Below, one piece after another: positions 15,601-64,000 of a DNA stretch of 64,000 bases. Each line of letters begins with the position of its first letter. Position 1 is the stretch's first letter. The notes beneath the pieces are model-generated. The model made no database searches and was not told the DNA's origin. It saw only the letters and a list, made by a program, of their open reading frames with translations. Origin of the DNA: Octopus sinensis (taxonomy: Eukaryota); NCBI RefSeq assembly GCF_006345805.1, contig NC_042999.1:148118001-148182000 (forward strand), given 5' to 3'. A program made the translations under genes and the position numbers.

Positions 15601-18600
15601 AAGAACCTTGGACGATTTCCGTAATAGAAGCGGGTAAGAAAACAATGAAAAAGAGGGGTTTTTGGTTATACAAAATCTGGACATGATAGAGAAGTTTTGT
15701 TATCAGATCTGAAATTAGCATCAGAAATTTGGTAGGAATCAGCAGTTCATGTGTCTATCAAAAAAATAATTTGTTGCCTAATGTTATGTAAAATTGACTA
15801 TAAATAGATAAGGAAAGTTACAGAGAAGGTTATAGCTCAACTAATTTGAAAGAGAGTTAGCCTAGATGAGATGCAGTTTGGCTTTGTGCCTGGGAGAAGC
15901 ACAACTGATGCTATATTTCTGGTAAGGCAACTGCAGAAGTATTTAGCTAAAAATAAACCTCAATACTTATTTTTTGTTGACACCCAGAAAGCTGTTGGCA
16001 GGGTCACCCGCTCCCTTCTAGTGGTCAATGCAGAAGCTAGGGATAGATGAATGGTTAGTGACAGCTGTACAAGTCATATACAGAGATACTGTTAGTAAGG
16101 TGAAAGTTGACAAAGAGTATAGCAATGAATTCACTGTACATGTAGGAGTTCATCAATGATCAGTTCTCATAGTGTTCCGGGCCATATCAGAGGAATTCAA
16201 CACTGGCTGCCTCTGGGAGTTCCTCTACACTGATGATCTTGTTCTTATAGCTAAATCACTACCTGACCTAGAGAAGAAATTCAGGTGCGGAAAGAAAACC
16301 TGGAATCTAAGGGTTTTAGAGTTAATTTAGCAAAGACCAAAGTCCTAGTAAGTAGGAAAACAAACAAATCACAATCCCTTCTGTGAGACAGCCCTGCTCG
16401 ATGTATAAGAAGCGTGTCGCTAGAAACTCCATACGTTGTACATAGTGTAAGCACTGGACACATAACAGGTGTAGCGGTACCAAAGGGAGGTTAACAGAGA
16501 AAATAGTCTATGCGTGTGGAAAATTAGAGGTACAATAAGCACTAAAAATGTGCACACAATATACTTCCTCAAATGCTTGTGGGTGTAGATAGTTTCTGTT
16601 ACCTAGGTGACCAAGTTAGTAGTAGAAGAGGAAGTTCTAAAAGTGTAGCTGCTAGAATAAGAACGGGCTGAGAAAAGTTCAGAGAGCTTCTAACTCTTTT
16701 CGAAACTAAGGGCCTCTCCCTCAGAATGAAAAGCAGATGTATGATGCTTCTGTACGTACAGCTATACAACAAAGAAGTGAAGCATGGACTATGATTACAG
16801 AAGATTTGCAAAGACTTGAAAGAAATGAAGTTAACATGCTCTGCTGGGTGGGTGATGCCAGTGGGCATGCATGTCAGAGTGTAAATGATTTAAGAGAAAA
16901 ACTGGGTATAAGAAGCATGTTTATTCATGTAATGCATATGGATGAGTGCAGCTGCGTAAAGAAGTGCTTAGCTCTAATTGTTGGGTGGGGGGTATCTATA
17001 GAATAGGTAGACATTGGACGAAACGGTGAGAAAGGATCTTCAGACACTGGACCTCGTTGAGGAAATGTCAAGAGATTAGGAGTTGTGCCAATTTGCTGTA
17101 CTTGAGAAGATGCATTAAGTTAAGTACAATTGCGGTCAACCATACATACAGGTATGTCCTTTGCAGTTGTCGGTGCCACGTAAAATGCACTCGTGCTGGT
17201 GCTACGTGAAATGCACGCGTGTCAGTGCTGCGTAGACGCACCTCTGCCAGTGGAACGTAAAAAGCACCCAGAACACTCTATAAAGTGGATGGCGCAATTA
17301 AAGGCACCTAACCATAGAAACTATGCCAAAAAAGAGAATTGTAGTCTGGACAGCTCCCCAGCTGATCAACTCCTGTCAAACTGACCAACCCATTTTAATA
17401 TAGAAAATGGACGTTGAACGATGACGATGATGATGATGATGACGACGACGACGACGAAAGTAGTAGTCAACATTGGCTTATGGCACCATTATCATATTTT
17501 ATAAAAAAAGAGAGAACTGTTCGTAAGTGCAAGGATACTAGCTTCTTATGATTAACAATCCGAATGACCAATGTTGACAATGGACTTTCCGTGGTTCCTC
17601 GGCTTGTGAAAGATCATTGAAGAGATTTCATTACTAAAACTTGAAAATTATAGATACTAAAATGATAAAGTTTTTTTTAATAATATTTACATTTAATTAT
17701 TTCTGTCGTGAGCGGAAGTTACTGCGGAATACTCAAGCAAATGATGCAAGTTTTTAATGGTCACGTAAGATGCCAGAAATACCAGTAAAATCCCCCTTTA
17801 ATCCTATATCACTTTCTTAGAAAGGACATGGTAGACGATTATTTCTTTTATATTATTTACATTATTTATATTTGACGGATATATTATTTTTTTATGTTGG
17901 CAGTTTTGTGAAAGACAGCTAAGGCGAAAAAACATTACATTGATGCTTTTGTGTCTACTAAATAAGCGGAGAGAATGTTTCATAAGCCACTGGATAAATT
18001 CTATTTATCGTTTAAAAGATTCTATCCAGAATGTTTGTATACGGTAAATGTAATATACTATACTACACTAATGAAAGTTGTTTTGGTAAAGAATCATCAA
18101 CTGTTCAAAAGCTTATTTGCAGCACTGATCAGCTGTCTAAAGTTGAAGTATTTGGAATATTTTCTAACCTTGAAGATTGAAAATGAAATCTAAACTTTGC
18201 AGTCCCTCATAGACAAATTAGATTGTTTCAGAATATGTTGAAGTGAATATGTTTAGATAAATTACTGCGGTAAGAGAAATTTCATGGGAGATTTGTAAAA
18301 ATGAAATTTTCTATGCATATTAGATGGAATGCTAGAAGTGGACAGTTAAACCAAGACGGATTATCTGATTAGGCAGACCAACAGAAAATAAACAGTGAGC
18401 ATTTAAAAATTGAACTAAAACCAAAATATTCTTCTTACCCATATTTATATGTCAGAGGAACACATGCATACTTCCATTTATCACCGTGATTGCCTGATAT
18501 AGTTTTCAGTAGAGTTTTTCCTGAAAAGTTTTCCCTATAAATATTTAGTTTCCCCATATCTTTTCCAAACATGTAATAGTAGAAACTAATACTCTTAGCC

Positions 18601-26169: not shown

Positions 26170-28421
26170 TTACTCGGTGTATGTGTATATGTATGTCTGC
26201 ATGTGTGTGTGTGTGTAAGTATGTGTAAAAAATTACATTGAATCGGCCATACATACATACATACACATACACAGATACATACACACATACATTCAGGCAT
26301 ATACACATACACCGAGTAAAAAATTTCAGTTATCTCTCTCTTTCACACATTACTCTCTCTGTCTCTTCACACACACTAACAGAAGCACTTCACTTACACA
26401 ACATACTGTCTCCCACACCCCATCAAACACACACACACACACATGTACATCAATGCTTCCCCTAGACGGTAACTTCAAAGACAACTTTTGTTATTAGAAG
26501 GTGGCTGACTATAGCTTGTTTACATTTAAGATGTTTAATACGTCACGAAATTGGTGGTCGAGACGGAGTAAATAAAATAAAGCCGAATGACGGAATATCA
26601 TTGGTTAAAATTCTAATTATTAAACAACGTTAAACTTAGAAGTTACAATTCCGTTTTCATTCTGGTTTACAATTAAGTTTACTTTTCACACATTCTACCA
26701 GTATACGAAGTTTCAAATTGTTTGGTTCAGTAGGAAAAATTTGAAAAAACTGGCTTCAGAATAGAAAAGATCCTGGGTTGGGTGAAGGGTGGAGGGAAGA
26801 GGGAAGAGATAATAGTGTCATTGAGAACCAAAGGTGTCAGGTAATGCTGAATAAGTGCTATAGACAGACCATAGTTAAGTTCCAGATTCGGTAATTTTGT
26901 GAATAAGGGGTTCAACGTTGGTTCTATGTCAGCGTGTGTATATAAGAATTTTTTGGCGTAATAAGATAAAAAAAAAACCAAGGCTGTGTAGATATTAGAG
27001 CATTTATAGAGAGAAGGTCTTACAGCTGTTTCTAAGATATTTATTAATTATACCCCTTCATCGGAGACGGTATGAGAGGATAGTTAAGTCAAAGTTAGTT
27101 TAGATGTGATATAAAATAGAGAGTGAGTGGAGGAAAGAAAATAGATGCAAGATATGTATGGATATTGAAGTTGTAAATCCATTTTTTTAGGCATCATGGT
27201 ATACATGCAATATTTCAATATCCTATGAGTAAAGTCCAAAAGTCCAACTGAGTTTAATATGAGTCCTTCCAAATATAGAGTTTATAAGCAATGTAAGATC
27301 CCTTATGAGTGAGATCCAGCAGATTTTTAAACTTGGTAATTCCCTGTAGAGAATTTATATACAGTGTTGCAGAGTCAAAGGTTTTCATTTAAAGTGACCA
27401 AAAAATAGGGAGTGTATTAGTATAGTCAAATCAAAAACAGGAAGAGAGGAGTGAAGAAAGAGAAAAAAAAAGAGAAGAGACAGAAAAAATGAGAGAGAAA
27501 AAAGAGAAAAAATAAAACCCCCGAAGGGTGGGATAAAGGGAATAAAGAAAAAAGAATAAAGAAAAATGAATATATAGATCAGTCAGTGGTCAATGGAGAT
27601 AATTTGAAAGTAGGAGTGGGGATATGAAGGGTGAAAGAGAGAGAAAGGTATTATAGTGTAAAAAGATAGAAGGAATGACAAATGTGTAGTAGTAGAGTCT
27701 AAGTGTAGGGGTAGAGATATGGGGTTAGTAGTATGAAGAATTAAGGAATTTATATGTTTAGCCGTCCGGTACTTAGTAATATGAGAAAATATATATGTGA
27801 AGATGAATATACATGTATATCTCAGACAAGTTACACAGACAATCCTTACTCGCATGCATATGCACTCATGCACGCCCGCTTATACATTCATCTGCATGTA
27901 ACATCACCCCTGTATCTGTAGGTATATATACCTTACATGCGTACGTATATTTACACATACCCACATACATGCATATACGCATACCCTCACTCATACATAT
28001 ACACGTACACATGGGTGTATGCACATACATACGAATATAATCAGATGGTTGTATATGTGAGGAACTAGATAGGGATTAGGAGTTAGAGTGTAAGTTTATA
28101 AGGTTATTGGGACTACCTAAGGAGTATTGTGGAAATGTACAGTATGGGCATTCTGGCATTTGAATTTGTGATAAATTTGTGATAAATATGGACCATGATA
28201 GAGTATAGGGTATATTTGTATTTTTGAGATGATGTATGTGATTGGCGAGTGTTGTAAATTTACTATGTTTCTCGTATCTAAAAGAATGGAGATGAGTGGC
28301 ATACCGTTGCTTAACATTTTTTGTTGATCCTACGTATATGGCTGTAGAGTTGTGTAATAGATTAAGGACCGTGCATTTGTAAAAGATACGCAAATAATTA
28401 TTTTATATCTATATCTATCTA

Positions 28422-29869: not shown

Positions 29870-32800
29870 CTGGGAATGTGTGTCTGTCTGTCTGTGTGTT
29901 TCCCTAAAACTTGAGAACTACACAACCAATTTCATTCAAATTTTACATATGCCTTACTTAGGGTCCGGGGAGTGTCATCGGCAAAAAATTTTTTTACCTT
30001 TTTGCCTAGGGCGAGCCAACAGCAATATTATATCTTCTCCATTACGATTCCCTAAAACTTGAGAACTATACAACCATTTTCATTCAAATTTTACACATGC
30101 CTTACTTAGAGTTCATGTAGTTTCATGGACAAAAAAGACGTTCAACTTCTTGCCTAGTGCGAGCCCATAGCAATATCATATCTTCTCCACTATTTCAGTA
30201 TTACGTGTTAAAAGTGAAACAAAAACATTTCTCTATTTTATGTCAGATACTTTCACTTTAACAATAAAAATAATAATAATAACAATTGAATTATATGTAG
30301 TAAGTAATAATTAAAATCAAACTAAAGTATAATATAATCATAACATAACAAAAGTAAAAATAGCAATTGGTATAAAATTGCATCAATGACTTGAACTTGA
30401 ATAAGTGGTTTCACATGAATGGGAATAAATTAAAAATAAAATTAGCGTGCAGAAATGGAATAGTCCAGATGGATAATAAAAAATTAAATTAAAGAAAAGA
30501 CTATTGTCTATAAAGTATACAATATAGAGAAAAAAGATTTGAACACCTGGAGGAAAGCACCATCGAAAAGTGTCTTGGTGCGACTATGAAAGATATCTAA
30601 CCAGAGGCGGTAAATTCGCCACAATAGAAGCAAGTTTCGAGTCAACGGAACGTGCAACGAGTACTCGACTCGAACTTGCAAAGTGGAAATATTATATTTT
30701 TACTTTTATATCTGGGACGTAGGACGTCCCGGATAAAAATTTAAAATGTCCCCCCAGAAGTAGAGGTAGGCTGGATTGTAGCCACACTTCTTTCCAAGAA
30801 GGAGGACAAGATACTATTGATCGAAATTGCAAGAGACGGGTTAACAATTCCAGTCTGTTATATATTTTGAGTATTGTTATCACTAGCGATATCAAGATAT
30901 AACTTTGTATTTTGTATTTTATGTGTAGATGTATATATATATATATAGATATACATGTAATGTGTACATATATATATACACATATATACATGCACTAGTA
31001 CTATAACCCGGCAACGACGGGTCATAATGCTAGTCTATATATAAAACTGAGAATATGTGTCTGTCTGTGTGTTTCCCTAAAACTTGAGAACTACACAACT
31101 AATTTCATTCAAATTTTATACATGCCTTACTTAGGGTCCGGGGAGTGTCATCGGCAAAAAGAATTTTTAACTTTTTGCCTAGGATGAGCCCACAGCAATA
31201 TCATATCTTCTCCTCTCTGATTCCCTAAAACTTGAGAACTACACAAACAATTTCATTCAAATATTACACATGCTTTACTTAGGGTCCATGTAGTGTCATG
31301 GGCAAAACAAATGTTTAACTTCTTGCCTAGAGCGAGCCCACAGCAATATCATATCTTCTCCGCTATTTCAGTATTACGTGTTAAAAGTGAAACAAAACAT
31401 CTCTCTATTGTATGTATATGGATGTGTATATATATATATATATATTACAAAATATAAAGTTATATCTTGAGATCGTTAGTGACAACAACGCTCAAAATAT
31501 ATAACAGACTGGAATAGTAGTGCTCAAATGAGCTGTATACACTTATTAATCCGAGGGGAGGCAATGCGAGCAGCAACTACAAGAGCACTACAAAATCCAC
31601 AGAAAGATCAAACACATAAATATATTCATATATTCATTGATATCTACAGAACAGACATAAAGCCCGACGTTTAGAAATATATAGTAATATATAAACATCA
31701 TATAAAAATATATTGTGCGCATAAGATCCACTCGACGTTCCATAAGAAATTTAGAAATAAAAATTGCAATAAAAGTTAGAGGTAATAATAACAATTGAAT
31801 TAAATATAGTAAATATAGTAAGTAGTAATTAGGTATATTTTATTTTATTAAAATGGTAATTAAATCGTAGTATAACAATTAAAAGAAAAAATAGCAATCA
31901 GTATAAAATGTATCAAGGACTTGAACTCGAATATGTGGCTTTGCATGAATGGGAGAAATTAAAAGATGAAAAATTTAATTGAGTGAATTAGTCCAGTTGG
32001 AGATGTGCGCATACCATTTAAAATAGCTGCTAGATCGAATTATATGCTTATAAAGTAGCATTCAGTATCTATGAGAATTTTGGAGAGTACGTAAAGTCTG
32101 CTCTTTCGCATGTAGCAGGTACATAATTGTGCATTTGTTTCCGTGTACTATGTGTTGTGTGTTATTGTGCTTCTTATTTGAACCTGTGAGTTGCTGTTTA
32201 ATTGTTAATTTTTATCGTTAAACGTTATTGTTACACGTTTTTTTTTTGTTTTTTGTCTGTCTGTGTTGAGACAGACAAAGAAGGAGTCGGCTGCCCCCCC
32301 CCCTAAGGGAGAGATGGCCAGACGAAGTATGTTCGAAAGTGTGTCGGATTTGTCGACTTCTGAAGAAGAACTTGAAAAGGCGATAAAGAAAATGGACAAG
32401 CAATTAGGCAACACATACGCAGGAGCGACAAGAACGGAGGAAAGAGAAATAGATTTGGCCAAGTTGCCAAGCTACCAGGCATTTATTAAAAAGGTCGGCG
32501 GTGAAGTGGAGTTGTCACCGCCACTAAAACGAAGAGAGTGGCATGAACGAAGGACCATCACGTACCGGGTTTATGCCAATGAAAAATAGGAAACAGAAGT
32601 CGTCAGTATGGAGACAATAGTAGAAGCATTAAAAAGAACGGAAGAAGACTTAATATTCTTGGCGGCAAGAGGCATAAAATTTCGGTACCGTGGTGGTCCA
32701 ATTCAAGAATGAAAGTGTGGCGAGGAAAATGGCAGCGAGAACGGTGAAGACAGAAAAGGTGTTCCTTCTGCCCTCATATCTGGGTAGAAAAACTACTCGG

Positions 32801-34374
32801 ATGAGGGTGGAGGGGATACCTCCCAATGTTGACGGAGAGTGGATAGTGGCAGCCGTAATCAATGGATGTGAGGAAGAAGTTGACATCCTCCATGCTACAG
32901 TGAAAGATGAAGGCTGGAAGGGTGCAGTTTTGGAACTAAACGTGCAAGCAGAGGCTGAAATATTGGAACAATTGCCTGAGAATATCAGAATGGGAAGTGT
33001 TATTATGAGAGTGTGGGTGGAGGGCAGAGCTCCACGCTGCTACAAGTGTGGCCTGAAAGGTCACATAAGAGCTAACTGCCCTCCCCCATCAAAGTAAATT
33101 GATGTGGAACCTCAAAGAGAGGTAGTGGCCAACGAGGAAGAGCAGAAATCAACAGAGAAAGACACACCGGAAGAGGAGGAGGTACAAAAAGAATGGGAAG
33201 AAGGCAGAAGAAGGAGGAAGAGAAGAAGGAAAAAAATAAATAGTGCTGAACCCCAATCCACCCCAACACCACTCGCACCCTCTGAGACCCACCCTTCCCC
33301 TGCAGACAGTGAACCCACCCGCTCCCCACCAACAAGAAAACAAAAATGAGAAACAAACACAAGATACCCCAAAAAAACCTGGGCCCAATTTTCTAGGTAT
33401 TTCGACGAAAAAAGACGTAAAAGAAATATTGAAAGATTATCACTGGTGTGACAAGGACAGTGATAGGTACGCTGTAATCTCGGAAGAACGTATAGAAGAA
33501 TTCGTGGGAAAATGTAAAAAGAAAAACTATAAATTGTTTAGATTTGAAATAGATGACGAGATGATAACGGAAATGGAAAAGAGATTTGCGATGAAAACAG
33601 AGCACAATGTGTATTATATTCAGGATAAAGTATGAAGGACAGGTAAGTGATGCTAGCGGATGGGGCCGTTAGCATCACTTTCATTTTTCATTTATCATTT
33701 TCATATTTTATTTTCCATATTTATGTAATTGTGATGTTTTATGTCTCCAATGTTTGTATTGTCCCCTCTGTGTAGCCCTTTATGGGTAAGAAAGAAACGA
33801 TGTGTTGTGTGTAAAAAACATCCTGACGAGGGGTCTGTGAATTTTAAATATACTATATGTTTCATATTAATTGGTGCATCTCCGAAACGGCCCGTAGATG
33901 AACTTTTATGTGTTTTTGTAAATTTGTATATTTATCTTCTATGTATTTTTCTCTGGAATTTTAATTCGTCTTTTTAATATGTCATTGTATGTTTTAGTAC
34001 CCCAATTTTTTAATTTAACAAATTTATACCAAACTAGCACTATGACCCGGCATCACCGGATCATAATGCTAGTATATATATGAAGATGAGAATGTCTGTC
34101 TGTCTGTGTGAATCCCTAAAACTTGAGAACTACACGACCAATTTCATTCAAATTTTACACATGCCTTTCTTAGGGTCCATGTAGTGTCATAGGCAAATCA
34201 CATTTTTAACTTCTTGCCTAGTGCGAGCCCAGAGCAATATCATATATTCTCCACTATTTCAATATTACGTATCAAAAGTAAAACAATAACTTCTCTCTAT
34301 TTTAATGTCAGATATTTTCACTTTAATACTGAAACTATTATCTCACATATATAAGGCATACATACATATATATG

Positions 34375-34590: not shown

Positions 34591-35059
34591 ATATATATAC
34601 ATAGGTACAAGTGTGGTTGTGTGGTAAGAAACTTCGTTCCAAAACAGATGGTCCTGGGTTCAGTCCCACTGTGTGGAAATGTCTTAATAAGGGTTCTGAT
34701 GTGGTAATGTTTGCTCTTTAACAACAGATATTTCTTGATGAAGTTACAGAGTTCCAGACGGGGCAGTATATTTGTAGCAATGAGGCTTTTTGGAGAATAT
34801 TTGGTTTTCCTATTCGTGGATGACACCCTCCAGTAGAACAATTGTCTGTTCAATTCCATATTTAAGAGATGGGAAATTATGCAAATTATTTACATTATTT
34901 ACATTATATACATTCGACAGATACTTGTCCTAAACCTGTTTGTTGCTAACACAACTTTTCGGGTGATATACCCCCTAGCCTTCTTCAGGTGTCTTGGGGA
35001 AATTTAGAACCTGGGTTCTCATTGCTAAGGTATTTTCGATGTTGTTGTTGTTGTTGTTC

Positions 35060-35137
<78 letters not shown>

Positions 35138-36414
35138 CTTCTTTCTACACCAAGGACAGAGAAGCTCATTGTATGCATTACCAGATTACACACGCAAATT
35201 CACAGGTAAAATATGTATTTAAAAAATTAATAAATAAATAAATTAATGGCTGGATGTTGTTTTCACAGCGATAATGCTCTTCTCAGTACATGAGCCGTTC
35301 CAGTTAACACGATTTTTTGCACTTCTTGTAGGGATGGTAAGCCTGGTATCATTTTCAAATAGGTTTCAGTACCTTTTTTTATAATTCCTAGAGATCCTAC
35401 AATCTCTACTGTAGTCGCCTTGAGATGCCACATTTTTTCAATTTCTATTAGCAAGTCTTTATATTTACTAATCTTGTCAAATTCTTTCGCCGCTATATTG
35501 TGATTGCAAGGGATACTCATGTCAATTAATAAACACATCCTTTTTGTCCGATCTTTTATTATAATATCCGGTTTATTAGCTTTTATAGTCTTGTCAGTCT
35601 GTACGGGGAAGTCCCATAGAATCGACACATTTTCTCCCTCAGTCACAGCTTCAGGATGGTGGTTATACCATTTGTCAGCGGTTTTGATTTTATAATACCT
35701 ACATATTGTCCAGTGTAAATACTGGCCGACTCTGTCATGTCTTGCTTTACAGGTGCTAAGACTCTACAACCTGAGATTAGGTGGTCTATTGTTTCAATCT
35801 CATCGTTAGAGAATCGGCATTTTGGGTCTGCTTCATTTTTTATCACATTGGCTTGGTAGTTCCGGGTTAAGAAGCATTGGTCTTGTTCAGCTAATATGAA
35901 ACCTTCACTCTCCGCTTTTAGCCCTGAGCTTCGCAACCATTGATGCGTGTGTTTCTGGTCGGCATCAGCTTGTTTGCTACGGGCCATATACTTGCCTTGC
36001 AGAGGTTTCTGTTCCCATCTGCTAGCTAATTTTTCATGCGCTTTTGTCTTTGCAATTAATTTTATTTTCTTTGCAGCAGAAGTTGGCGCATTTCCTTCAA
36101 CCTGATCAATCTGGTAGGTATCTAAGAGATAAGCAGCGAATTTTTTGCTCTCTTTCAGAATAGATTGAAGTTTTTTCGGTCTTTCATGTTTTTCAACAAG
36201 TTTTAATATCCAATCGTTGGTTGCTTCAAGGTATTTGGCCAGTCCGATCGTGGTGGTTTTGTACGTAAGTTCAAGCTGGATCAAACCTCGTCCTTATTAT
36301 TGTTGTTATTGTAATGATTATTATTATTGTTATTGTTCAGGTCACTTCCAAGCAGTGACATGAACAATAACAATAATAATAACAATAATAATGATAATAA
36401 TCATAATCATAATC

Positions 36415-36463
<49 letters not shown>

Positions 36464-37104
36464 TAACAACAACATTGAAAAATACCTTAGGAATGAGAAC
36501 CCAAGTTCGAAATTTCCTCAAGACACCTGAAGAAGGCAGGAGGGTATATTAGCCTAAACGTTGTGTTAACAACAAACAAGATGAGGACAAGTATCCGTCG
36601 CATGTAAATAATGTAAATAATTGTCTGTTCGTTTAGAGAATGGACAAAGAATGCATTTTACTACTGAATCTGTTGCTCAGCAGACACTTGCTGCAAGGGA
36701 AACTACATTAACAGCATTTGACAGTTATCTTAATATGTGACGTGTAGGACAATTGTCTGTTCATTTAGGGAATGAACAAAGAATGCATTCTACTACCGAA
36801 ACTGCTGCTCAGTATTCCCTTGCTCCAAGGGAAACTACTTCACAGCCTTTTTTCAAATTTTGCCAGACATACTCTTTTACTAGAACCTTATTGTACATCT
36901 ATACATATAAAGATGAGAATGTGTTTCTGTCTGTCGGTGTGAATCCCTAAAACTTGAGAACTACACAACCAATTTCATTCAAATTTTACACATGATTTAC
37001 TTAGGGTCCATGTAGTGTCATATTGTAATGTCAGATATTTACACTTTAATACTGAAACTATTAAAGTGAAAATATTATCTCACATATATACAGGCACACA
37101 TACA

Positions 37105-43430: not shown

Positions 43431-46400
43431 TTTCTTTCCTCCTTGCTTCCTTAAATCATATATCCAATACAAGGATATAAAACATGCACACATACATGGT
43501 GGTTGTCTAATCCTTATGCATATTTTGACCACTTCCTGTATCTACACCTTATCACCATCATGGTATCTGATGTGGCTTTTTAAGCCAGACAATGTTCTGA
43601 AAAGACACCCACATAGATTTCACATCCGATTTGGACCATCTTTGTGGAAATTCAAATGTCTTTTGAGGCCTCTGTTGGGTTTGCAAACCTTCTGGCATAC
43701 ACTACATTCAAAGGTGTGCACATACATGTAGGCAGAATAGTTGGTGGAGGTTCGCTTTCCATGGGTTCGCAGATGAGATTTGAGCCCAGCAAAAGACAGG
43801 CATGGTCTGTCACAGACTGTGCACACAAAAAGGTCATTGTAAATCATTTTCTTAATCGTTACATTTTTCCTTAGATCTCTTTTGGATCTTACATGCGTTA
43901 TCCTGGCCTCTTCGAATGCTTTCACTCCACTCCACACCTTTTTTTGCCATCAAACTCGATCCGAAGCAAGGGTTTCTATGTCTGCTGGATCCATTCTAAG
44001 TGACTTCATAGTAGTCCTTATGCCATCCTTAAACCTTTTAGGTTTACGCCGATAGCGTTTCCCCTCTGGAAGCTCACCATAAAACAGTTGTTTCGGCATG
44101 CGTTCATCTACCATTCGAACAATATGGCCACACTATCTCATTTGGTTCCTTAAAATCATAGCTTTAATTGAGATGATGCCTGTAGGTGCAAGGACATCTG
44201 TGTTTGGAATAAAAGAACTCCGTTTAATTTTCAAAATGCGATGAAGGCATTTTTGGTGGAATTGTTCTAACAATTTAAAATGCCTTTCATAACAAGTCCA
44301 CGTTTCACAGGAATACAACAGGGATGGTAAGACAAATGATTTGTAAAGAGCCAGCTTTGTATTCTTATTTATATGTCGCTGGCACCAAACGCGTGACTCC
44401 AAGCCACCAAAATGCTTTTGCTGCCCTTTGAATTCGCAGCTGTATTTCTGTATCAAGATTTCCAGCATGTTCAACAGAGTTTCCAAGGCAGATGAACGAA
44501 TCGACAACCTCAAGTAACTTACACTTAACAAAACTTTTAGAGGAGTTACAAACAGCACCACATACAATTGAGGCATTACAACTGTTTTTCTTTTTCCAAG
44601 TTCATGGTCAAGCCAAAATCATCACAAGCCGAGTCAAATGCATATACAAGAGATTGCAGACCTGTTTCAGAATGGCTGACAAGATCGCAATCGTCAGCGT
44701 ACAAAAGTTCCCTAATGAGTGAAGTAAAAACCTTCGTTTTAAATTTCAGTCTGGTCAGATTAAAATCATTTCTGTTGTTCGATATTTTATGTAAACCCCT
44801 CCTCAGAATTTTGAAAAGAATGTGACAACACAACAGCAAAGTATATTGCAAAGAGGGTAGGTGCATTAAGGTCTCCTTGCTTTACTCCATTAAAAGATTC
44901 AGAGAGCCTACCACCAAAGTTAACTCTAGCTTTCATATCTTGATGCAAAGCCCTGACCATTTTTACAAATTGATGGGGGGGGGACCTATTTTCCTTAGAG
45001 CTATCCACAGAGCATTTCGATTAATAGTATCGAATGATTTGCGCGAATCAACAAAGCAATGGTATAGAGCAAGATTCTGTTCAATACACTTTTCTTGTAA
45101 TTTTCTGACAAGTGTGCTCCTGGAGGAAGGAAAACCACACTGAGACTCAGACTCAATATTTGGAACTATAAAAGTATTTAAACGTTCGAACAAAATGCGG
45201 GCAAGTACCTTTCCAACCACAGACAAACGCGAAATCCCACGAAAATTACCACACAGATCCTTTGGCCCCGATTTATACAAGGATACTAAAATGGCGTCAA
45301 TCCAGACTTGAAGCACTTTCTCAGTTCTCCAACAGTGACAAATAAAAATATTTAAGAGTTCAAACATTTTGTCACCCCCCCCCCCATATTTCAAGACTTC
45401 TGCACAGATTCCATCAGACCCTGGAGACTTATTGTTATTCAGCTTATTCACAGCTAAATAAATGTCATTTAGGGTTGCATACATACTTACATGCACACAT
45501 ACATACATACATACATACATACATACATGCATACATGCATACATGCATACATACATGCATACATACATACATACATACATACATACATGCATACATGCAT
45601 ACATACATACATACATACATACATACATACATGCATACATGCATACATACATACATACAAACATACATACATACATACATACATACATACATACATACAT
45701 ACATACAAACATACATACAAACATACATACATACATACATACATACAAACATACATACATACATACATACATGCATATATATATACATACATACATACAT
45801 ACATACATACATACATACATACAAACATACATACATACATACATACATACATACATACATACATACATACATGCATATATACATACATACATACATACAT
45901 ACATACATACATACAAACATACATACATACATACATACATACATACATACATGCACACATACATACATACATACATACATACATACATGCATGCATACAT
46001 ACATACATACATACATACATACATGCATACATGCATACATACATACATACATACATACATACATACATGCATACATACATACATACATACATACATGCAT
46101 ACATGCATACATGCATACATACATACATACATACATGCATACATACATGCATACATACATACATACATACATACATACATGCATACAAACATACATACAT
46201 ACATACATACATACATACATACATACATGCATACATACATACACATACATACATACATACATACATACATACATGCATACATACATACATACATACATAC
46301 ATACATACATACATACAAACATACATGCATACATGCATACATACATGCATACATACAAACATACATACATACATACATACATACATACATACATACATAC

Positions 46401-49200
46401 ATACATACATACATAGTACGTACGTACATACGTACACATACACACACACACACGAACACACACACACATATACACTAACACACTCATGCACACACAAGTA
46501 TATATGAAGGGAACGTGAAGATGTGATATTGTATTTTATCATTGACACAAGTGAAACGAAGTCGTTTAAGCTGAGAATAGGATTTAGGTTCACCTAAATG
46601 TCTTTTGTTTTTTGAATGGCGTTTGAAAGTTTTAGTTCCATTTGTTCGGTCTACGGAAGTATCTATCTATCTATTTTATCAGAGTGACTGTAGATGAGTG
46701 TTTCGTTTCATCAATATTTGTGTTTTAAACGTAGCCTTAAATCATACTTAGGATGACAATGTAGAACAAGTCCCTTTGATTAATAAATCAGTCTTTTCAA
46801 TGCCCTCCATATTGCTTCTGTTAACTCAGTGATATTCACAGTAAGAGATAAAAAAAAAACAAGGATTTGCAGTAGAAAGTTGCCTAAAGTATCACACGGT
46901 CAAGCAAAATTCCGAACTCTTTTGCAACACCTTAACAGATTTATTGAACATACGCCATTCATAAAAAAATACTTTTTTACTTACTTGAGTCCTAAACTGC
47001 GACATATTGCGCTTGCCATGAGGCGGGCACGAGAACTGCTGTAGCATATGGTTCCCCATTTGCCATTATAATGTATTTTCACTAAGCCAGAATATTCTAG
47101 GGCAACATCTCCATTATCTTTCAAAGAAAAGATTAGATATACATATATACAAGCATAAATATTTCTTTGATAAGTAAACATGTTAAACAAAATATTACAT
47201 GACATATTTTGAAAAATGTCCTTTCTCAAATTAATTACTTTCGTTTTATTTGCAAAGCATAAATAACACGTCATATGTTAGTTATAGAATTTTCAAAACC
47301 TTGAGATACTACGTAAATCATTGGTAAGTAGCTTGTTTACCAACCACATGGTTCCGGGTTCAGTCCCACTGCGTGGCACCTTGGGCAAGTGTCTTCTACT
47401 ATAGTCTCAGACCGACCAAAGCCTTGTAAGTGGATTTGGTAGGCGGAAACTGAAAGAAGCCCGTCGTATATATGTATATATGTATGTGTGTGCGCGTGTG
47501 TGTTTGTGTGTCTGTGTTTGTCCCGCTAGCATTGCTTGACAACCGATGCTGGTGTGTGTATGTCCCCGTCACTTAGCGGTTCGGCAAAAGAGACCGATAG
47601 AATAAGTACTGGGCTTACAAAGAATAAGTCCCGGGGTCGAGTTGCTCGGCTAAAGGCGGTGCCCCAGCATGGCCGCAGTCAAATGACTGAAACAAGTAAA
47701 AGAGTAAAGAGTAAAGAGAGAGCATTTTTTAAAATATCGGTACGTGCAGCCTATTGTGGGTTATTAATTCAATATAAGGAAGATGTTGAAATTTCCCATC
47801 TGCGAATTTATTTTTTTCAACAGCAAAGGGAGCTATTTTTTTCGAAGGGATAAGCTAACAAAAGCCTCTTTATTCTGTCTTCTCACACAGCCTGCACATA
47901 AACTAATGGCGAATGCTGCATAAAGTTTCATGGAGCGAAGGCAAAACTCTTATTTAAAGGTTGATTCTTTTGGACGAATCATATGTGATAGTTTAAAAGA
48001 GGCTTGAACGACAATGCTAAAACATATTTGAAACAATGGACAATAGTCGAAATATCATAATAGATCGGTAAATAAGCAACCCTAAAGTAAAACAACGCAT
48101 TGGTAGGTGTTAATAAATTTTAGGGTAGCAAAAAATTCTAGAAAAATTCTCCGCTACCAGCGGTCAAGTGAGAAAGAAAAATTAGTCAATAGACTATATA
48201 ATATACATTCAAACATATAAGGGACGGCCATAATAGGACATCCGACTCACTAGAAAGAGCAGCCAAACTCCGCTCTTTCTAGTGAGTCGTATGTCCTATT
48301 ATGGCCGTCCCTTATATGTTTGAATATATATATATATATATATTTATCAATCTATCCACCCATCTATCTATCGGTCTGTCTCGCTACTTCAGTCTCTATC
48401 AGTCTATATGATTATCACTCCATCAAGTAATTCCTCAGTATATACGTATCTGTGCATGTGTGTGTTTCTGTGTGTGTTGAGTGTGTATGTGTAGCTACAC
48501 TTGTCATCTAACTCAAAGTAACCTTTTCGTTGCGACACAGTAGGAGGTCAACCCATCTCTGTCTTCCTCTCCCACAAACAGGAAATCATGGGTCAACATG
48601 GCCGGTTTCACGTGCCACTTAATTTTCATAAGGGGTAAGATCTGTTTGAAAGAAAAGCATAACTAATAGCTAGATGTACTCACTAAACATAGTGAATTTG
48701 GTCAACCGATTAACCCGGTTTGTATATATTATCTATTAATCGTTTAAAAGCGTTCCTTTGCTACTATATCTATCGTATGGCCTAAGGAAATCTTTCTTCC
48801 CAGCATGCTGTACTGCCACTGCATTATTATAATGGTTTCAAATTTTGGAACAAGGCCAGTAATTTTGAGGGAGAGTGTAAAGCGGTTACATTGACCCCAG
48901 TGCATTAGTGATATTTATTTTATCGATGATGACAGGATGAATGGCAAAGTCGACCTCGGTAGAATTTCAAATGAGAACATGAAGACGGACGAAATACCGC
49001 TAAGCATTTTGCTCGGCGTGCTAACGATTCTGCCAGAATACCTTACTGTATTCTTATAACGAGAAACATTTTTACGTCTTTTTCTTCTTTAAGAGAAAAA
49101 CAATAAGCTATATCTACTTACAAGTAGCATATCCAGATGTCAAAGCAACAAATATCAGTAAAGTCAGGCAGACACTGATTTGACGCGGGTACCAGTTCAT
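3966..49200 (-). CDS. Multi-exon host gene: secreted or membrane SRCR + tandem MAM domain protein (9 coding exons in window, 3' end off-window to the left)
   Basis: Manual splice of exons 49122-49200, 46985-47117, 29235-29392, 23840-23980, 18439-18676, 13329-13423, 11044-11163, 5438-5785, 3966-4124. All introns are GT..AG and phases (1,2,1,1,2,1,1,1,1) give one open frame: [51 protein letters not shown]...[22 protein letters not shown]...[13 protein letters not shown]...SDIAIDDV...CDFHEDTC...DHSGSGYYL...[15 protein letters not shown]...CHFNNPKLC... Confidence 0.9.
4310..4600 (+). mobile_element. Non-autonomous Helitron 5' part (same family as 61562-61944)
   Basis: Head tatatataaaactgaagttgtgtg. 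The segment gagagttac..aaaatgcttatatagttatttccctt is the reverse complement of 61596-61630. Confidence 0.6.
5438..5785 (-). CDS. Coding exon 8: MAM2 C-terminal part
   Basis: YYLVYKRS...TSPLL...[17 protein letters not shown]...[11 protein letters not shown]...[16 protein letters not shown]. Acceptor ttttgtag, donor gtaagt. Confidence 0.9.
6277..7790 (-). mobile_element. Degenerate second R4/Dong-family LINE, internally deleted
   Basis: [44 protein letters not shown], then an (ATA/ATG)n tract, then AQDQALATN. Many stops and frameshifts. 5' end abuts the TAA tract at 7791. Confidence 0.8.
7791..7927. repeat. (TTA)n/(TTG)n microsatellite
   Basis: Direct reading. Confidence 0.98.
7928..9039 (-). 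mobile_element. 5'-truncated R4/Dong LINE copy 2 (zinc knuckle + REL endonuclease + 3'UTR)
   Basis: Near-identical to 1-440 where they overlap. [18 protein letters not shown] knuckle, [26 protein letters not shown]. 3' end runs into (TAA)n. Confidence 0.92.
9051..9573 (-). mobile_element. 5'-truncated R4/Dong LINE copy 3 (REL + 3'UTR), tandem with copy 2
   Basis: [21 protein letters not shown]...LIDVSIP...KYKDL. Same 3'UTR as copy 2 with several substitutions. TTA tracts at both ends (9040-9050, 9574-9621). Confidence 0.92.
9625..10420 (-). mobile_element. Penelope-like element fragment (RT thumb + GIY-YIG endonuclease)
   Basis: [43 protein letters not shown] across frameshifted ORFs. Confidence 0.85.
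10470..10543 (+). mobile_element. tRNA-derived head of the hammerhead SINE family (head only)
   Basis: A-box-like tggtgtagtgattaag and B-box gagttcgattcc followed by aggcagtgacctga, the same as the reverse complement of 57797-57870. Confidence 0.8.
10544..10880 (+). mobile_element. 3' REL fragment of another R4/Dong-like LINE fused to the tRNA head
   Basis: KILWDFMI...[22 protein letters not shown]...VPIIVGTVG...[18 protein letters not shown]. Confidence 0.8.
11044..11163 (-). CDS. Coding exon 7: MAM2 N-terminal part (not in ORF track)
   Basis: [39 protein letters not shown](G). Acceptor aatttcag, donor gtaaat. Confidence 0.87.
12140..12478 (-). mobile_element. tRNA-derived SINE family C (MIR/CORE-like centre)
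   Basis: tRNA-like head on minus strand, central ttcatgttgctccagtt..tcagctggcaaaa. Related copies at 19165-19490 (-) and 19985-20265 (+). Confidence 0.7.
13329..13423 (-). CDS. Coding exon 6: MAM1 C-terminal part (not in ORF track)
   Basis: [31 protein letters not shown] carries the MAM FE...DIAIDD...C motif. Phase 2 in, phase 1 out. Donor gtaaga. Confidence 0.9.
13780..15785 (+). mobile_element. Chapaev3-like (CMC / Transib-RAG supergroup) DNA transposon relic
   Basis: Degenerate motifs [83 protein letters not shown]. Right end aatttgttgcctaatg resembles a Chapaev3 terminus. Left TIR not found. Confidence 0.65.
15790..17455 (+). mobile_element. RTE-clade LINE, 5'-truncated and degenerate, with (GAT)n tail
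   Basis: [51 protein letters not shown]. The 3'UTR has a ~27-bp tandem repeat (17173-17270) and ends in (GAT/GAC)n. Confidence 0.85.
18439..18676 (-). CDS. Coding exon 5: MAM1 middle
   Basis: [46 protein letters not shown]...[14 protein letters not shown] carries the MAM F-x-Y-x-M-x-G...G-x-L...G-x-HG-x2-W pattern. Acceptor ttttacag, donor gtaaga. Confidence 0.9.
19515..19728 (-). mobile_element. tRNA-derived SINE family B
   Basis: Minus-strand A-box tgacagaatcg, B-box gggttcaaattcc, core gtcgactctgcctttcatcc..gataaa..gtaac. Further copies at 22775-22990, 48832-49038, 49570-49682, 49685-49882 and a partial one at 13600-13660. Confidence 0.8.
19985..20265 (+). mobile_element. tRNA-derived SINE family C
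   Basis: gtggctaagtgg A-box, aagttcaattcc B-box, tgtgtccttgagcaa CORE-like segment. Confidence 0.7.
20340..20860 (+). mobile_element. CRE/NeSL-like REL LINE 3' fragment
   Basis: VTICDS...[10 protein letters not shown]...[18 protein letters not shown] resembles the C-terminal QR(I/L)S.A.QRGNA motif of CRE-type REL domains. T-rich 3'UTR follows. Confidence 0.55.
21480..21880. repeat. CT-rich simple-sequence region
   Basis: (CT)n and polypyrimidine tracts. Confidence 0.9.
22030..22282 (-). mobile_element. tRNA-SINE family A, diverged copy
   Basis: ttctttcagtttccgtctgccaaattcactcacaaggctttgg...attgaacccagaacc matches 54140-54296. Confidence 0.75.
23840..23980 (-). CDS. Coding exon 4: MAM1 N-terminal part
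   Basis: [46 protein letters not shown](G) carries the MAM C-x-FE...C...W...GP-x2-DHT motif. Acceptor tttttgcag, donor gtaatt. Confidence 0.9.
24890..25620 (-). mobile_element. Penelope-like RT N-terminal fragment
   Basis: [45 protein letters not shown]: typical PLE RT pre-motif region. GC-rich relative to the flanks. Confidence 0.85.
26640..28400 (-). mobile_element. Penelope-like element in partial-tandem layout: GIY-YIG end, 3'UTR, pLTR with hammerhead variant, start of next ORF
   Basis: IFYKCTV...[29 protein letters not shown] (28076-28393). Segment 26950-27320 is the reverse complement of 43000-43350 and contains a hammerhead-like motif at 27017-27068. Confidence 0.75.
27017..27068 (-). 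ncRNA. Minimal hammerhead ribozyme variant, family 2 (PLE pLTR)
   Basis: GUCU-CCGAUGA-A-GGGGUAU..AUAUCUU-A-GAA-ACAGCUGU-A-AGAC: stem I GUCU/AGAC, perfectly palindromic stem III, GUA site, U4C core variant. Confidence 0.6.
29235..29392 (-). CDS. Coding exon 3: SRCR C-terminal half
   Basis: [52 protein letters not shown] matches C-x-G-x-E-x4-C ... C ... V-x-C. Acceptor cctttcag, donor gtgagt. Confidence 0.88.
32263..33635 (+). pseudogene. Disrupted gag-like / LINE ORF1 (RRM-like + CCHC zinc knuckle), no ORF2 downstream
   Basis: [21 protein letters not shown] knuckle. Nonsense codons at 32587 and 33095, frameshifts near 32680 and 33345 join the four ORF-track pieces into one ~440-codon frame. 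Confidence 0.75.
33819..33900 (+). ncRNA. Type I hammerhead ribozyme with canonical core, family 3
   Basis: CAUC-CUGACGA-GGGG[46 nt]CUCC-GAA-ACGG(C)CCGU-A-GAUG: stem I CAUC/GAUG, stem II GGGG/CUCC, near-palindromic stem III, GUA cleavage after 33896. Confidence 0.75.
34603..34680 (+). mobile_element. tRNA-SINE family A head fragment
   Basis: gtggttgtgtggtaag...gggttcagtcccactg. Confidence 0.7.
34852..36620. mobile_element. Inverted head-to-head dimer of the tRNA/(TAA)n/hammerhead SINE with a nested Dong LINE, flanked by a target-site duplication
   Basis: Left arm (-) 34852-35135 plus 36294-36345, right arm (+) 36346-36620. Centre ttcaggtcacttcc|aagcagtgacatgaa. aattgtctgttc duplicated at 34840-34851 and 36619-36630. 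Confidence 0.8.
35136..36293 (-). mobile_element. 5'-truncated R4/Dong LINE (third family) inserted in the SINE (TAA)n tract
   Basis: [80 protein letters not shown] tracts on both sides. Confidence 0.9.
37170..40765 (-). mobile_element. Near full-length CR1/L2-group LINE (ORF1 with CCCH finger; ORF2 APE + RT), inactivated
   Basis: APE: [38 protein letters not shown]: [37 protein letters not shown]. Nonsense codons at 39596 and 37668, frameshift near 39023. 3' tail ggcggtgccccagcatggccacag..ctgaaac then (TAAA)n. Confidence 0.92.
41190..41480 (-). mobile_element. tRNA-SINE family A, diverged copy
   Basis: cttgtttcagccatgtgattgcggcc..aagcaccgcc tail and ttctttcagtttccg body. Confidence 0.75.
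41676..41720 (+). ncRNA. Minimal type I hammerhead ribozyme, family 4
   Basis: CAUAUG-CUGAUGA-cGGaU-CAGU-AcCCa-GAA-ACUCGAGU-C-CGAGUG: canonical core, perfect palindromic stem III, GUC site. Stem II has two mismatches that single transitions would repair. Confidence 0.7.
41890..41968. repeat. (GATA)n microsatellite
   Basis: Direct reading. Confidence 0.98.
42050..42950 (-). mobile_element. Non-autonomous Helitron-like element (related copy 54460-55085)
   Basis: Both begin on + with (c/g)tagctg....c(c/t)cggtaattcccggg (hairpin + CTAG read on minus) and share aatgggttatttcc and an aagttt...aaaatc end. Confidence 0.55.
43000..43360 (+). mobile_element. Solo PLE pLTR-like segment with hammerhead variant at 43242-43292
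   Basis: Reverse-complement homolog of 26950-27320. GUCU-aCGAUGA-A-GGGAcAU..AUAUCCU-G-GAA-ACAGCUGU-A-AGAC. Confidence 0.65.
43560..45476 (-). mobile_element. RTE-clade LINE, 5'-truncated, with two C-terminal C2H2 fingers
   Basis: [86 protein letters not shown] and [21 protein letters not shown]. Confidence 0.88.
45477..46415. repeat. ~940-bp (TACA)n compound satellite with TGCA and AACA variants
   Basis: Direct reading. It generates the spurious MYVC/HTYI ORFs. Confidence 0.98.
46985..47117 (-). CDS. Coding exon 2: SRCR N-terminal half
   Basis: (Y)[43 protein letters not shown](K) matches the SRCR G-x-V-x4-G-x-WGTIC ... C-R-x-LG pattern. Acceptor ctttgaaag, donor gtaagt. Confidence 0.88.
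47322..47716 (+). mobile_element. tRNA-SINE family A with CR1-like LINE tail
   Basis: B-box gggttcagtccc. Tail ggcggtgccccagcatggccgcagtc..gactgaaac then (gtaaaga)n. Confidence 0.85.
48201..48331. repeat. Near-perfect 60-bp inverted repeat with 11-nt spacer
   Basis: 48201-48260 versus the reverse complement of 48272-48331 shows two mismatches. Confidence 0.95.
49122..49200 (-). CDS. Coding exon 1: signal peptide
   Basis: ATG at 49200, [26 protein letters not shown]. Acceptor tttacag at 49210 upstream of the ATG (so a 5'UTR exon lies further right). Donor gtaagt at 49121. Confidence 0.8.
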
Positions 49201-57460: not shown

Positions 57461-57564
57461 GTATGTATATATATATATATATATTATATATATACATAGG
57501 CACGTACGAAGTGTGTGTTTGTGTGTACGTATGTGCATTAATATTATATTAGTATTGATAATAC

Positions 57565-57735
57565 AGTTCTATATTTAGTAGGTGAGGAATTATGTACATT
57601 ATTTACATTATTTACATTTGACGGATATTTATCCTCATCTTGTTTCTTGTTAACACAGCGTTTCAGCTACATCAGGTGCCTTGGTGAAATTTCGAACCTG
57701 GGTTCTCGTTCTTAAGGTATTTTTCGATGCTGTTG

Positions 57736-57801
<66 letters not shown>

Positions 57802-57913
57802 TCACTGCCTGGAATCGAAATCGGACTCTTGGGGTTAGTAGACCGCGCTCTTAACCACTTCGCCATATGCCCGTGGATGTAGTGGTTAAGAGCGCTATTA
57901 TAATAATAATAAT

Positions 57914-57984
<71 letters not shown>

Positions 57985-58131
57985 CAACAACATCGAAAAG
58001 TTCCTTAGGAATGAGAACCCAGGTTCGAAATTTCCCCGACACACCTGATGAAGGTATATCAGCCGAACCGTTGTGTTAACAAACAAGATGAGGGCAAATA
58101 TCCGTCAAATGTAAATAATGTAAATAATGTA
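57565..58131. mobile_element. Second inverted head-to-head dimer of the tRNA/(TAA)n/hammerhead SINE
   Basis: Left arm (-) is complete with A/B boxes (57797-57872). Right arm (+) 57873-58131 has a truncated head. Hammerhead remnants at 57648-57680 (-) and 58041-58076 (+). Confidence 0.85.
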
Positions 58132-58159
58132 GTTTTGATCAGATGAATGTATAACGTCT

Positions 58160-63059: not shown

Positions 63060-63580
63060 CCAGGGTGTTTAGACTTGGTCCGAATTTTCTAATAAAACAG
63101 AGTTCTTTGTTATGACGTTGAGTGAAAGTTACGTTGTTACTGAATTGGTAAAGTGGGAAAGTTGTGAATTTGGGATTTTTATTTGAAGCACATCTGTCTA
63201 TGTGGCCGCTGACAGGTATTTTCCTGTATTCAGGTTCCTAATTTGGGATTTATGTACTGCCATCCTTTTTCGTAAGCTTTTTTTTTTATGGCCAATATAT
63301 TGTCTATTACACCCTACGCATGTTAACACGTAAATTAAGTTTTCTGATGTAAAGGTGAAGTTTGTTCTGATGGTAAAATGATGTCCTTTTTCTAATGTGT
63401 ATTCAGAACCTTCTACTAAGATGACACAGATTCCGAAGTTGGGCTTTCCACAATTTTTAACTGTTGATTTTCTGGTTATTATTGGGTTTAGTTTAGCTTG
63501 GGTTAAAATCTTTTTTAAGGATTTTGGTTGCTGTCTACTTTTTATAATGGTGTACGTTTGGAGGATTCGGTTCATCTTTG
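63060..63580 (-). mobile_element. Penelope-like (Neptune-type) linker + GIY-YIG fragment
   Basis: RQQPKSLKKILT, CGKPNFGIC, FTFTSENLIYVLTCVGCNRQYIG, LRKRMAVHKSQI, then KELCFIRKF. Confidence 0.85.
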
Positions 63581-63624
63581 GGTCTCCATATATATATATA
63601 TATATATATATGTGTATATATATA

Positions 63625-64000
63625 CAGGGTGGGGAAGCAAAATTTACGTTAAGTTGCTTTTTCTCAGCAGGCACTAAGTTAATTGTTTTGAAACCTAGCA
63701 TATATTGATGCCATAATCATACCTAACACTATTATCCTTACCTTTACAGAAACTTTTGCTTATATGAGTAATCTGGAAAGCAAACGTCAAAGAGTGTGTG
63801 ATTTGCTGAATGCATTCGTCACACCAAAGGAGATTTCAAGAATAGTTGGAGTGTCCATAAAGACTGTTTATAATGTAAAGAATAGAATGACTATGAGCAA
63901 CACTATTACAAGGAAGTCTGGAAGTGGAGGAATCAACAAAAAACATTCCAATGCTTTTATTAAAGCTCTCAAATCCCAAATCCTAAAGGATCCAACCAAA
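63625..64000 (+). mobile_element. Tc1/mariner-superfamily transposon 5' end (TIR + HTH), runs off the right edge
   Basis: TA|CAGGGTGGGGAAGCAAAATTTAC terminus. ORF open from ATG 63764 to the window end: MSNLESKRQRVCDLL..TPKEISRIVGVSIKTVYNVK..RKSGSGG. Confidence 0.8.

Follow-up and report, generated by a model that had tools for sequence, protein, structure and literature searches.

A candidate tRNA-headed short retroelement with a hammerhead motif and Penelope-like insertion marks in Octopus sinensis

Minimal hammerhead ribozymes (min-HHRs) reportedly reside in the pseudo-long terminal repeats (pLTRs) of metazoan Penelope-like elements (PLEs), a placement attributed to work of Lunse and colleagues from 2017. 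Short interspersed nuclear elements (SINEs) are by definition dependants of long interspersed nuclear elements (LINEs). Here, we describe a short element of Octopus sinensis that carries a motif of the first kind and has the build of the second. It lies in a stretch of 64,000 nucleotides (NCBI RefSeq assembly GCF_006345805.1, contig NC_042999.1, positions 148,118,001 to 148,182,000 of the forward strand), which we call the window and whose first letter is position 1 of all coordinates below. In sense direction the element consists of a tRNA-like head, a (TAA)n(CAA)n tract and a tail of ~190 nt, and it occurs in the window as two inverted pairs, at locus 1 and locus 2. It is probably a ~310-nt non-autonomous retrotransposon of the octopus genome, mobilised by the reverse transcriptase (RT) and GIY-YIG nuclease of a PLE that primes on both target strands; we put the probability of this whole reading at about 0.6.

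The min-HHRs described in metazoan PLE pLTRs adjoin an open reading frame (ORF) for RT and GIY-YIG nuclease (Cervera & de la Pena 2014, PMC4209133). The octopus motif does not. It sits instead in a short element with an RNA polymerase III (Pol III)-type head and an internal (TAA)n tract, and its helix II is reconstructed at 3-6 bp. With known PLE insertions (Craig et al. 2021, PMC8557442; Frangieh et al. 2024, PMC11167929) the octopus element has in common the inverted head-to-head copies inside one duplication, the extension of 35-40 nt on one arm, duplications of 12 and ~10 bp and the AT-rich cut sites, but it has no ORF and no tandem pLTR arrangement. The closest precedent is Sm-alpha of Schistosoma. 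According to PMC6765202, Sm-alpha and Sj-alpha (Ferbeyre et al. 1998, Laha et al. 2000) are likewise short and non-autonomous, with an apparent Pol III promoter and a type I hammerhead. However, Sm-alpha has a canonical, efficient hammerhead with loop-loop contacts and mostly tandem arrays, whereas in the octopus element the min-HHR is loopless, a (TAA)n spacer is present and the copies form inverted pairs in place of tandems.

Two further groups invite comparison. Animal retrozymes without long terminal repeats (non-LTR retrozymes) (Cervera & de la Pena 2020, PMC7229834; Li et al. 2026 preprint, 10.64898/2026.07.22.740005) are also non-autonomous, carry a type I hammerhead and have been proposed to originate from PLE pLTRs. 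They are, however, tandem repeats processed to circular RNAs and have no Pol III tRNA-type head, while head-to-tail tandem copies of the octopus element, the criterion for a retrozyme, are absent from the window, where only inverted pairs occur. The tRNA-derived SINEs of octopus (Ohshima & Okada 1994 in PMC10886601; 'unclassified SINEs' in PMC13282606) are alike in host genus, in their tRNA-derived head and in the high SINE load of the host. Named families among them are OK, OR1 and OR2. In the literature covered there is no report that links octopus SINEs to hammerheads, and the octopus repeat literature covered holds no link between SINEs and PLEs. Both the type of ribozyme and the insertion marks are already known; a cephalopod SINE that unites them with a (TAA)n spacer and a head of the Pol III tRNA type was not found in the literature covered.

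Two inverted head-to-head pairs

Four hammerhead-like stretches are found in the window, at 34948-34993(-), 36522-36567(+), 57652-57680(-) and 58040-58077(+), in arms that we term A, B, C and D. They lie within 4 nt of the coordinates given by an earlier sequence-only reading of this DNA. A 22-nt motif of the tail matches exactly these four sites, with a chance expectation of 0 in the window. The ~150-nt tail likewise occurs four times, as two inverted pairs: arm A (34852-35040, -) with arm B (36474-36618, +) at locus 1, and arm C (57560-57730, -) with arm D (57989-58129, +) at locus 2. A tail profile (nhmmer) finds the four tails of the window at E values of 1e-50 to 1e-58, and BLAST returns the same four. 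The tail contains a box-B-like motif (GAGAACCCAGGTTCGAAATTTC), the minimal type I hammerhead motif, two to three copies of the 9-mer ATGTAAATA and a terminal segment of 35-40 nt. Scans of metagenome and viral sequences with conserved tail patterns gave no further tail copies. At 17849-17881(-) the profile also hits 33 nt of the tail's 3' part, TATCCGTCAAATATAAATAATGTAAATAAT (nhmmer E=0.002), perhaps a copy with severe 5' truncation that lacks the extension.

Of the four arms, C is complete, with all four parts (head, tract, tail and a final segment of 36-40 nt), and it alone has a full head. In this head of 77 nt (57796-57872, -) box A (TGGCGAAGTGG) matches perfectly and box B (TTCGATTCC) in part, and the 3' terminus is CAGTGACCTGAA. 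Neither ARAGORN nor the Rfam tRNA model (E<=10, applied also to the head copy at 10474-10543 described below) calls a tRNA in it, and the label 'tRNA-derived' therefore rests on the promoter boxes. The sense strand of every arm is free of T runs of at least 4, while the antisense strands have T4-5, an asymmetry that fits a putative Pol III read-through in the sense direction. The order of tRNA-like head, TAA tract and hammerhead tail had been recognized by the sequence-only reading; it recurs in an independent copy from Octopus bimaculoides, swept up in the gene model NUP42, where tail, (TAA)n and head follow one another in the same way. A search with SINE-derived peptides had two hits. Translation of the tail's antisense strand gives a peptide that is 95% identical to the NUP42 model, and the alignment continues into the antisense head. 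Since this copy has all three parts, head, (TAA)n and tail travel together.

An extra head copy, 86% identical, is found at 10474-10543(+). It is joined straight to a 5'-truncated C-terminal fragment of a LINE in the same orientation, which extends to ~10870, and it has neither a (TAA)n tract nor a hammerhead tail. This copy may reflect a modular head, or it may be a further nested insertion in which sequence was lost.

Locus 1 is enclosed by a target-site duplication of 12 bp, AATTGTCTGTTC, repeated exactly at 34840-34851 and 36619-36630. Reading inward from the left, arm A (-) starts with a 3' extension ('tail') of 35 nt (34852-34886) that has no counterpart in arm B. It continues with the tail body (34887-35040), in which (ATGTAAATA)n 9-mers occupy 34887-34913 and the box-B-like motif lies at 34999-35020 beside the hammerhead remnant, and with a proximal (CAA)n(TAA)n tract (35041-35136) that was read directly. 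On the far side of a nested LINE the arm resumes with a distal (TAA/CAA)n tract (36294-36335) and ends in 11 nt that remain of the head's 3' end, AGTGACCTGAA (36336-36346). There it meets arm B (+), which opens with an 18-nt remnant of the same head end, TCCAAGCAGTGACATGAA (36347-36364). The two arms thus reach 11 and 18 nt into the head before they break off, and at 36346/36347 they adjoin without any sequence between them. Arm B goes on through a (CAA/TAA)n tract (36365-36473) into its tail (36474-36618, with the hammerhead remnant at 36522-36567), which terminates in 9-mer repeats and has no extension.

An uninterrupted paralog of this site, GTAGGAC-AATTGTCTGTTC-ATTTAGG, is present at 36744-36769, and the 12-mer stands there only once. 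Because the paralog reads through the 12-mer once, it can serve as a proxy for the empty site, and the whole pair was therefore inserted as one event. The exact 12-bp repeat and the paralog together bear out the earlier proposal that this duplication-flanked foldback is a single integration. The Helitron-like flank right of the insertion forms a 132-bp tandem duplication with 86% identity (36619-36750 and 36751-36882), and the second unit also carries ~7-20 nt that match the sequence left of the insertion. A split Helitron ORF had been proposed for the flanks. When they are joined, the top PDB match is indeed Helraiser (7LCC, residues 767-812), with an alignment that spans the junction, but its E value is 0.33, and Pfam gives no match for the joined flanks; the Helitron label is plausible but weak.

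The sequence between the two parts of arm A does not belong to the element, although it had at first been taken for a stretch of the element between its arms. What fills 35137-36293 (-) is a non-LTR retrotransposon of 1.16 kb, 5'-truncated and frameshifted, that covers the C-terminal region of an RT; its homologues carry RVT_1 and zf-RVT. It has the orientation of arm A and (TAA)n on both sides. The interior ORFs were considered as the PLE partner and rejected, since they are the C-terminal part of a non-LTR LINE. An intact ORF of the same family (776 amino acids) is found at 205-2535; its relatives in the collection searched have at most 57% identity and include a Pediculus reverse transcriptase. 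Pediculus is among the species listed for R4/Dong-like elements, and Dong elements have (TAA)n as their target in molluscs (PMC7998251). A PDB search found no restriction-like endonuclease in the window LINE, and hence the term 'R4/Dong-like' rests on the relatives and on the (TAA)n target. The nested LINE is probably R4/Dong-like, and we take it to have entered the (TAA)n tract of the SINE itself at a later time, in a target-specific manner. The internal microsatellite of the SINE may be a landing pad for Dong elements.

This nested LINE also makes another origin of the element conceivable. A SINE composed of head and (TAA)n, mobilised by Dong/R4 elements, might have entered repeatedly into (TAA)n at the 5' terminus of a short PLE derivative that was a unit of its own, and the head would then be irrelevant to the mobility of the tail. 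The probable entry of a Dong-like LINE into the (TAA)n tract of arm A speaks for such a composite, as does the head copy at 10474-10543, which is joined to a LINE fragment and has no (TAA)n or tail. However, each of the five informative copies (arms A to D and the NUP42 copy of O. bimaculoides) has head sequence beyond the (TAA)n. In addition, the head remnants of locus 1 meet exactly at the centre, which is expected for two 5'-truncated complementary DNAs (cDNAs) of one composite RNA and unlikely for separate insertions. We therefore regard a composite of this kind as rather improbable and favor a single RNA that comprises head, tract and tail.

Locus 2 has the same general build. Its candidate target-site duplication of 10 bp consists of TAGTATTGAT at 57550-57559 on the left and TAGTTTTGAT at 58130-58139 on the right, which differ at one position; this is the sole match of at least 10 nt with at most one mismatch in the 40-nt flanks. 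Arm C (-) begins with a 3' extension of 36-40 nt (57560-57599), to which arm D has no counterpart, and runs through the tail body (57600-57730, with 9-mers at 57600-57617 and the hammerhead remnant at 57652-57680) and a (TAA)n tract (57731-57795) up to the first base of the head. The central junction (57873-57895, +) consists of an 8-nt filler and a 15-nt inverted copy of head positions 14-28 (the complement of 57845-57859). It is followed directly by the (TAA)n tract of arm D (57896-57988, +) and by its tail (57989-58129, +, with the hammerhead remnant at 58040-58077), which again terminates in 9-mer repeats and has no extension.

The pairs of locus 1 and locus 2 are the two longest inverted repeats in the window, and both of the two loci hold a head-to-head pair. 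The remaining long inverted repeats were dismissed as (TA)n microsatellite or as an unrelated element that resembles a miniature inverted-repeat transposable element (MITE). Within a locus the arms are 85.7% and 87.3% identical, and between loci 80-89%. Parsimony-informative sites group the arms by locus 4:0:1, among them CUGAAGA (A, B) versus CUGAUGA (C, D), and this grouping fits a model with one source per pair.

Long inverted arms with a direct repeat at their flanks bear a superficial likeness to a foldback or MITE DNA transposon. They might also arise from two independent insertions or from a palindrome formed later at the DNA level, and the flanking 12-mer would then be a coincidence. 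The uninterrupted paralog, with its single 12-mer, argues against all of these. Two nested insertions should have left duplications of their own at the head ends, and none is seen. The ends of each pair are unequal, the extension being found on one side only, and the duplications differ in length (12 versus ~10 bp), unlike those made by a DDE transposase. Furthermore, the outward-facing 3' ends are what priming from both target strands predicts. We consider these origins very improbable, and single integration of each pair remains the explanation that we pursue below.

The hammerhead motif

The majority consensus of the four copies reads GACAC-CUGAWGA-A-GGC...GCC-GAAA-CG-U-U-GUGUU. It has the CUGANGA ... 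GAAA core with U16.1 and H17 in the order of a type I hammerhead. GUGUU pairs with GACAC to give a helix I of 5 bp with one G.U pair, and helix III is loopless, with palindromic positions 15.2-16.2. The unpaired nucleotide between A9 and 10.1 and the G10.1-C11.1 pair are both present in copies A, B and D. A descriptor was drawn up from published min-HHR features. It asks for a 5-bp helix I, CUGANGA, 0-1 unpaired nucleotides, a helix II of at least 3 bp that begins with G10.1-C11.1, GAAA, a complementary loopless 15.2/16.2 pair, U16.1, an H17 that is not G, and the 3' strand of helix I. The consensus satisfies the descriptor in all eight resolutions of its three ambiguous columns. In the real window (both strands, 128 kb) the descriptor has 0 matches, as has a relaxed version, and in 30 Mb of order-1 Markov sequence it has 0 as well; since it was written once the motif was known, this figure is a guide and not a formal probability.

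None of the four individual copies passes the descriptor, each having 1-3 lesions. In copy A (34948-34993, -) C15.2 is changed to A and a G of helix II to C, and in copy B (36522-36567, +) G12 is changed to U. Copy C (57652-57680, -) has a 17-nt deletion together with U16.1 to C and C11.1 to U. Copy D (58040-58077, +) has an 8-nt deletion, A15.1 to C and a lost outermost pair of helix I (G to C). The loopless, dimer-type, type I hammerhead that the sequence-only reading had proposed thus stands for the consensus, which passes the strict descriptor, and for no single copy. That reading was also right that every copy is mutated in core or stem, and the lesions are private to each copy. From its 5-bp stem II, GGCUG/CAGCC, only GGC/GCC is certain, and the rest is a guess that mixes two copies. 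Private lesions around an intact consensus are as expected from neutral decay of an intact source, and all four copies here are, to judge from their lesions, dead.

An extra nucleotide after A9, a short helix I and a palindromic ACGU had earlier been taken as a special, viroid-like design. However, these are published defining traits of metazoan PLE min-HHRs, whose hallmarks are a helix I of 4-5 bp, the conserved G10.1-C11.1 pair and a palindromic 15.2-16.2 (PMC4209133). Such min-HHRs are predicted to act as dimers and have low activity in vitro, and pairs of the motif lie on opposite strands at a spacing of 100-700 bp (PMC4209133). Since the traits of the octopus motif are those already published, the ribozyme itself is not new. 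On these traits the hammerhead is a member of the known PLE-type min-HHR class.

One-sided extensions and the mode of integration

The extensions of arms A and C are ~76% identical over 34 nt, a score reached by 12 of 20000 random 42-mers from the window, and neither of them resembles the flanks of arms B and D. In each of the two pairs exactly one arm has the extension (A and C, not B and D), and the 3' ends of both arms face outward, against the duplication. Since the central junctions differ between the loci, the pairs were formed separately. This suggests that pairing stems from the way in which the element integrates and is not a trait of a single source copy.

These features have a close counterpart in PLE biology. 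PLE insertions often include an adjacent inverted, 5'-truncated copy and often a 'tail' of 30-40 bp at one end only (PMC8557442), and the length of their target-site duplication is variable (PMC8557442, PMC11167929). The PLE RT starts at two adjacent internal sites, the interval between them being the tail, and the PLE enzyme cleaves and extends both strands, unlike R2 and L1 (PMC11167929). Penelope elements are present and have been recently active in octopus genomes (PMC13282606, PMC8967140). The octopus pairs match the described insertions in the inverted 5'-truncated copy, seen at both loci, and in the one-end extension of 35-40 nt. They also match them in a duplication of variable length around the whole complex, 12 bp and exact at locus 1, 10 bp and a candidate at locus 2.

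From this agreement we infer the following course of events. A PLE RT/GIY-YIG protein, probably as a dimer, would cut both target strands 10-12 bp apart. Each 3'-OH would then prime reverse transcription on the SINE RNA, presumably a Pol III transcript, at one of two start sites that lie 35-40 nt apart. The arm that uses the distal start would keep the 'tail', and the arm that uses the proximal start would end in the 9-mer repeats. The two cDNAs would extend toward the head and be joined head-to-head at a variable point in or near it, giving an inverted pair inside one target-site duplication. The hammerhead, a putative ribozyme, would be part of a captured 3' module of a PLE, intact in the source copies and neutrally decayed in all four copies here.

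Neither locus has an ORF with a telomerase-like RT and a GIY-YIG endonuclease within it or next to it, so the element can be at most a non-autonomous dependant. Two GIY-YIG-like ORFs elsewhere in the window were considered as the partner and rejected, as they are isolated remnants without similarity to the tail. The ORF remnant at 63198-63701(-) has a GIY-YIG-like motif (..NLIYVLTCVGCNRQYIGHKKKSLRKRM..), a weak Pfam match to GIY-YIG (E=0.005) and no adjoining RT; the one at 28076-28393(-) also has a GIY-YIG-like motif and no adjoining RT. Both may be remnants of PLEs with an N-terminal endonuclease (Naiad type). PLEs of the Naiad type are reported as old relics in cephalopods.

The partner might also be a LINE. 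The element would then be a 'stringent' tRNA-SINE with a tail of the CR1/L2/RTE type, its hammerhead a fossil without a role, and its pairs the result of twin priming or template switching by the LINE machinery. Microsatellite-like short tandem repeat tails are found in LINE/SINE pairs, and arms B and D do carry (ATGTAAATA)2-3 at their very 3' end; LINEs are, moreover, abundant in the window. However, the tail has no counterpart in any LINE of the window. What twin priming inverts is the 5' part of a copy; it does not double the whole 3' tail on both arms. Dependence on a LINE also leaves unexplained why a homologous extension is found on one arm only at both loci, and the complete PLE-type hammerhead would be a coincidence. 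Dependence on a LINE is thus unlikely in our view, and mobilisation by a PLE accounts for more of the anatomy.

Several observations weigh against PLE mobilisation and have to be set beside it. The sample consists of four copies at two loci only, and arms of the same locus are not clearly closer to each other than arms of different loci. At locus 2 the candidate duplication has its one mismatch, and arm D is without head positions 29-76, which calls for an extra deletion or a templated junction. No PLE whose 3' end matches turned up in the window, to which this comparison was confined, and the short tandem repeats at the 3' end resemble the tails of stringent LINE/SINE pairs. As to the hammerhead, the descriptor was made after the motif had been seen. 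Helix II has 3-6 bp, three of its columns being known from two copies only, against 7-8 bp in Schistosoma min-HHRs. Rfam hammerhead models match no copy, neither when the whole window is scanned with the gathering threshold nor when the two loci are scanned with a limit of E<=10, a result that is expected for decayed, loopless variants. Minimum free energy and cofold predictions (ViennaRNA) for the consensus, as monomer and as dimer, prefer other pairings such as a GUUGU/ACAAC hairpin.

Beyond these two loci, octopus genomes might hold a whole class of SINEs with a Pol III, tRNA-type head whose mobility depends on PLE enzymes and not on LINEs. They would often integrate as head-to-head foldbacks because PLE enzymes prime on both target strands. 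This generalisation is tentative, and we would give it somewhat less than even odds.

Surrounding sequences and meaning for octopus genomes

Other repeats lie around locus 1. A repeat (..CCCTAAAACTTGAGAACTACAC..) flanks it on both sides with 95% identity (34073-34340 and 36900-37063), each copy being followed by a (TA)n microsatellite. The same repeat occurs twice more at 31040-31330, inside a MITE-looking element with terminal inverted repeats of ~100 nt (30844-30951/31411-31518). A distinct, tRNA-derived SINE-like head (..GGTCCTGGGTTCAGTCCCACTGTGTGG..) is located at 34600-34700(+), just left of the Helitron fragment and after a long (TA)n/(CA)n microsatellite. Farther away, an ORF at 5400-5891(-) has a clear MAM domain (Pfam E=2e-18) and may be an exon of a host gene in an otherwise transposon-rich window. 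At 44963-46593 several long ORFs of 300-500 amino acids each overlap on both strands, and one of them has an RVT_1 match at its end; this overlap may be due, for example, to low complexity or to tandem repeats within the sequence.

The ribozyme adds little to the meaning of the element, as it belongs to a known min-HHR type and its four copies are dead. Of more interest is the integration. If the reading given here is true, the element would be a short and handy natural template for the study of PLE integration, with two RT starts, priming on both strands and inverted copies. It could also aid the classification of the very large 'unclassified SINE' fraction in Octopus (PMC13282606). Should the family prove to be large, part of this 'unclassified SINE' load of octopus would be dependent on PLEs. 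The built-in inverted pairs are potential sources of hairpin RNA, and with PLE-type integration they would be a systematic source of long hairpin RNAs. The octopus lineage is known for heavy A-to-I editing. Finally, if SINEs can indeed be mobilised by PLE enzymes, SINE parasitism would extend to a third class of retroelements.

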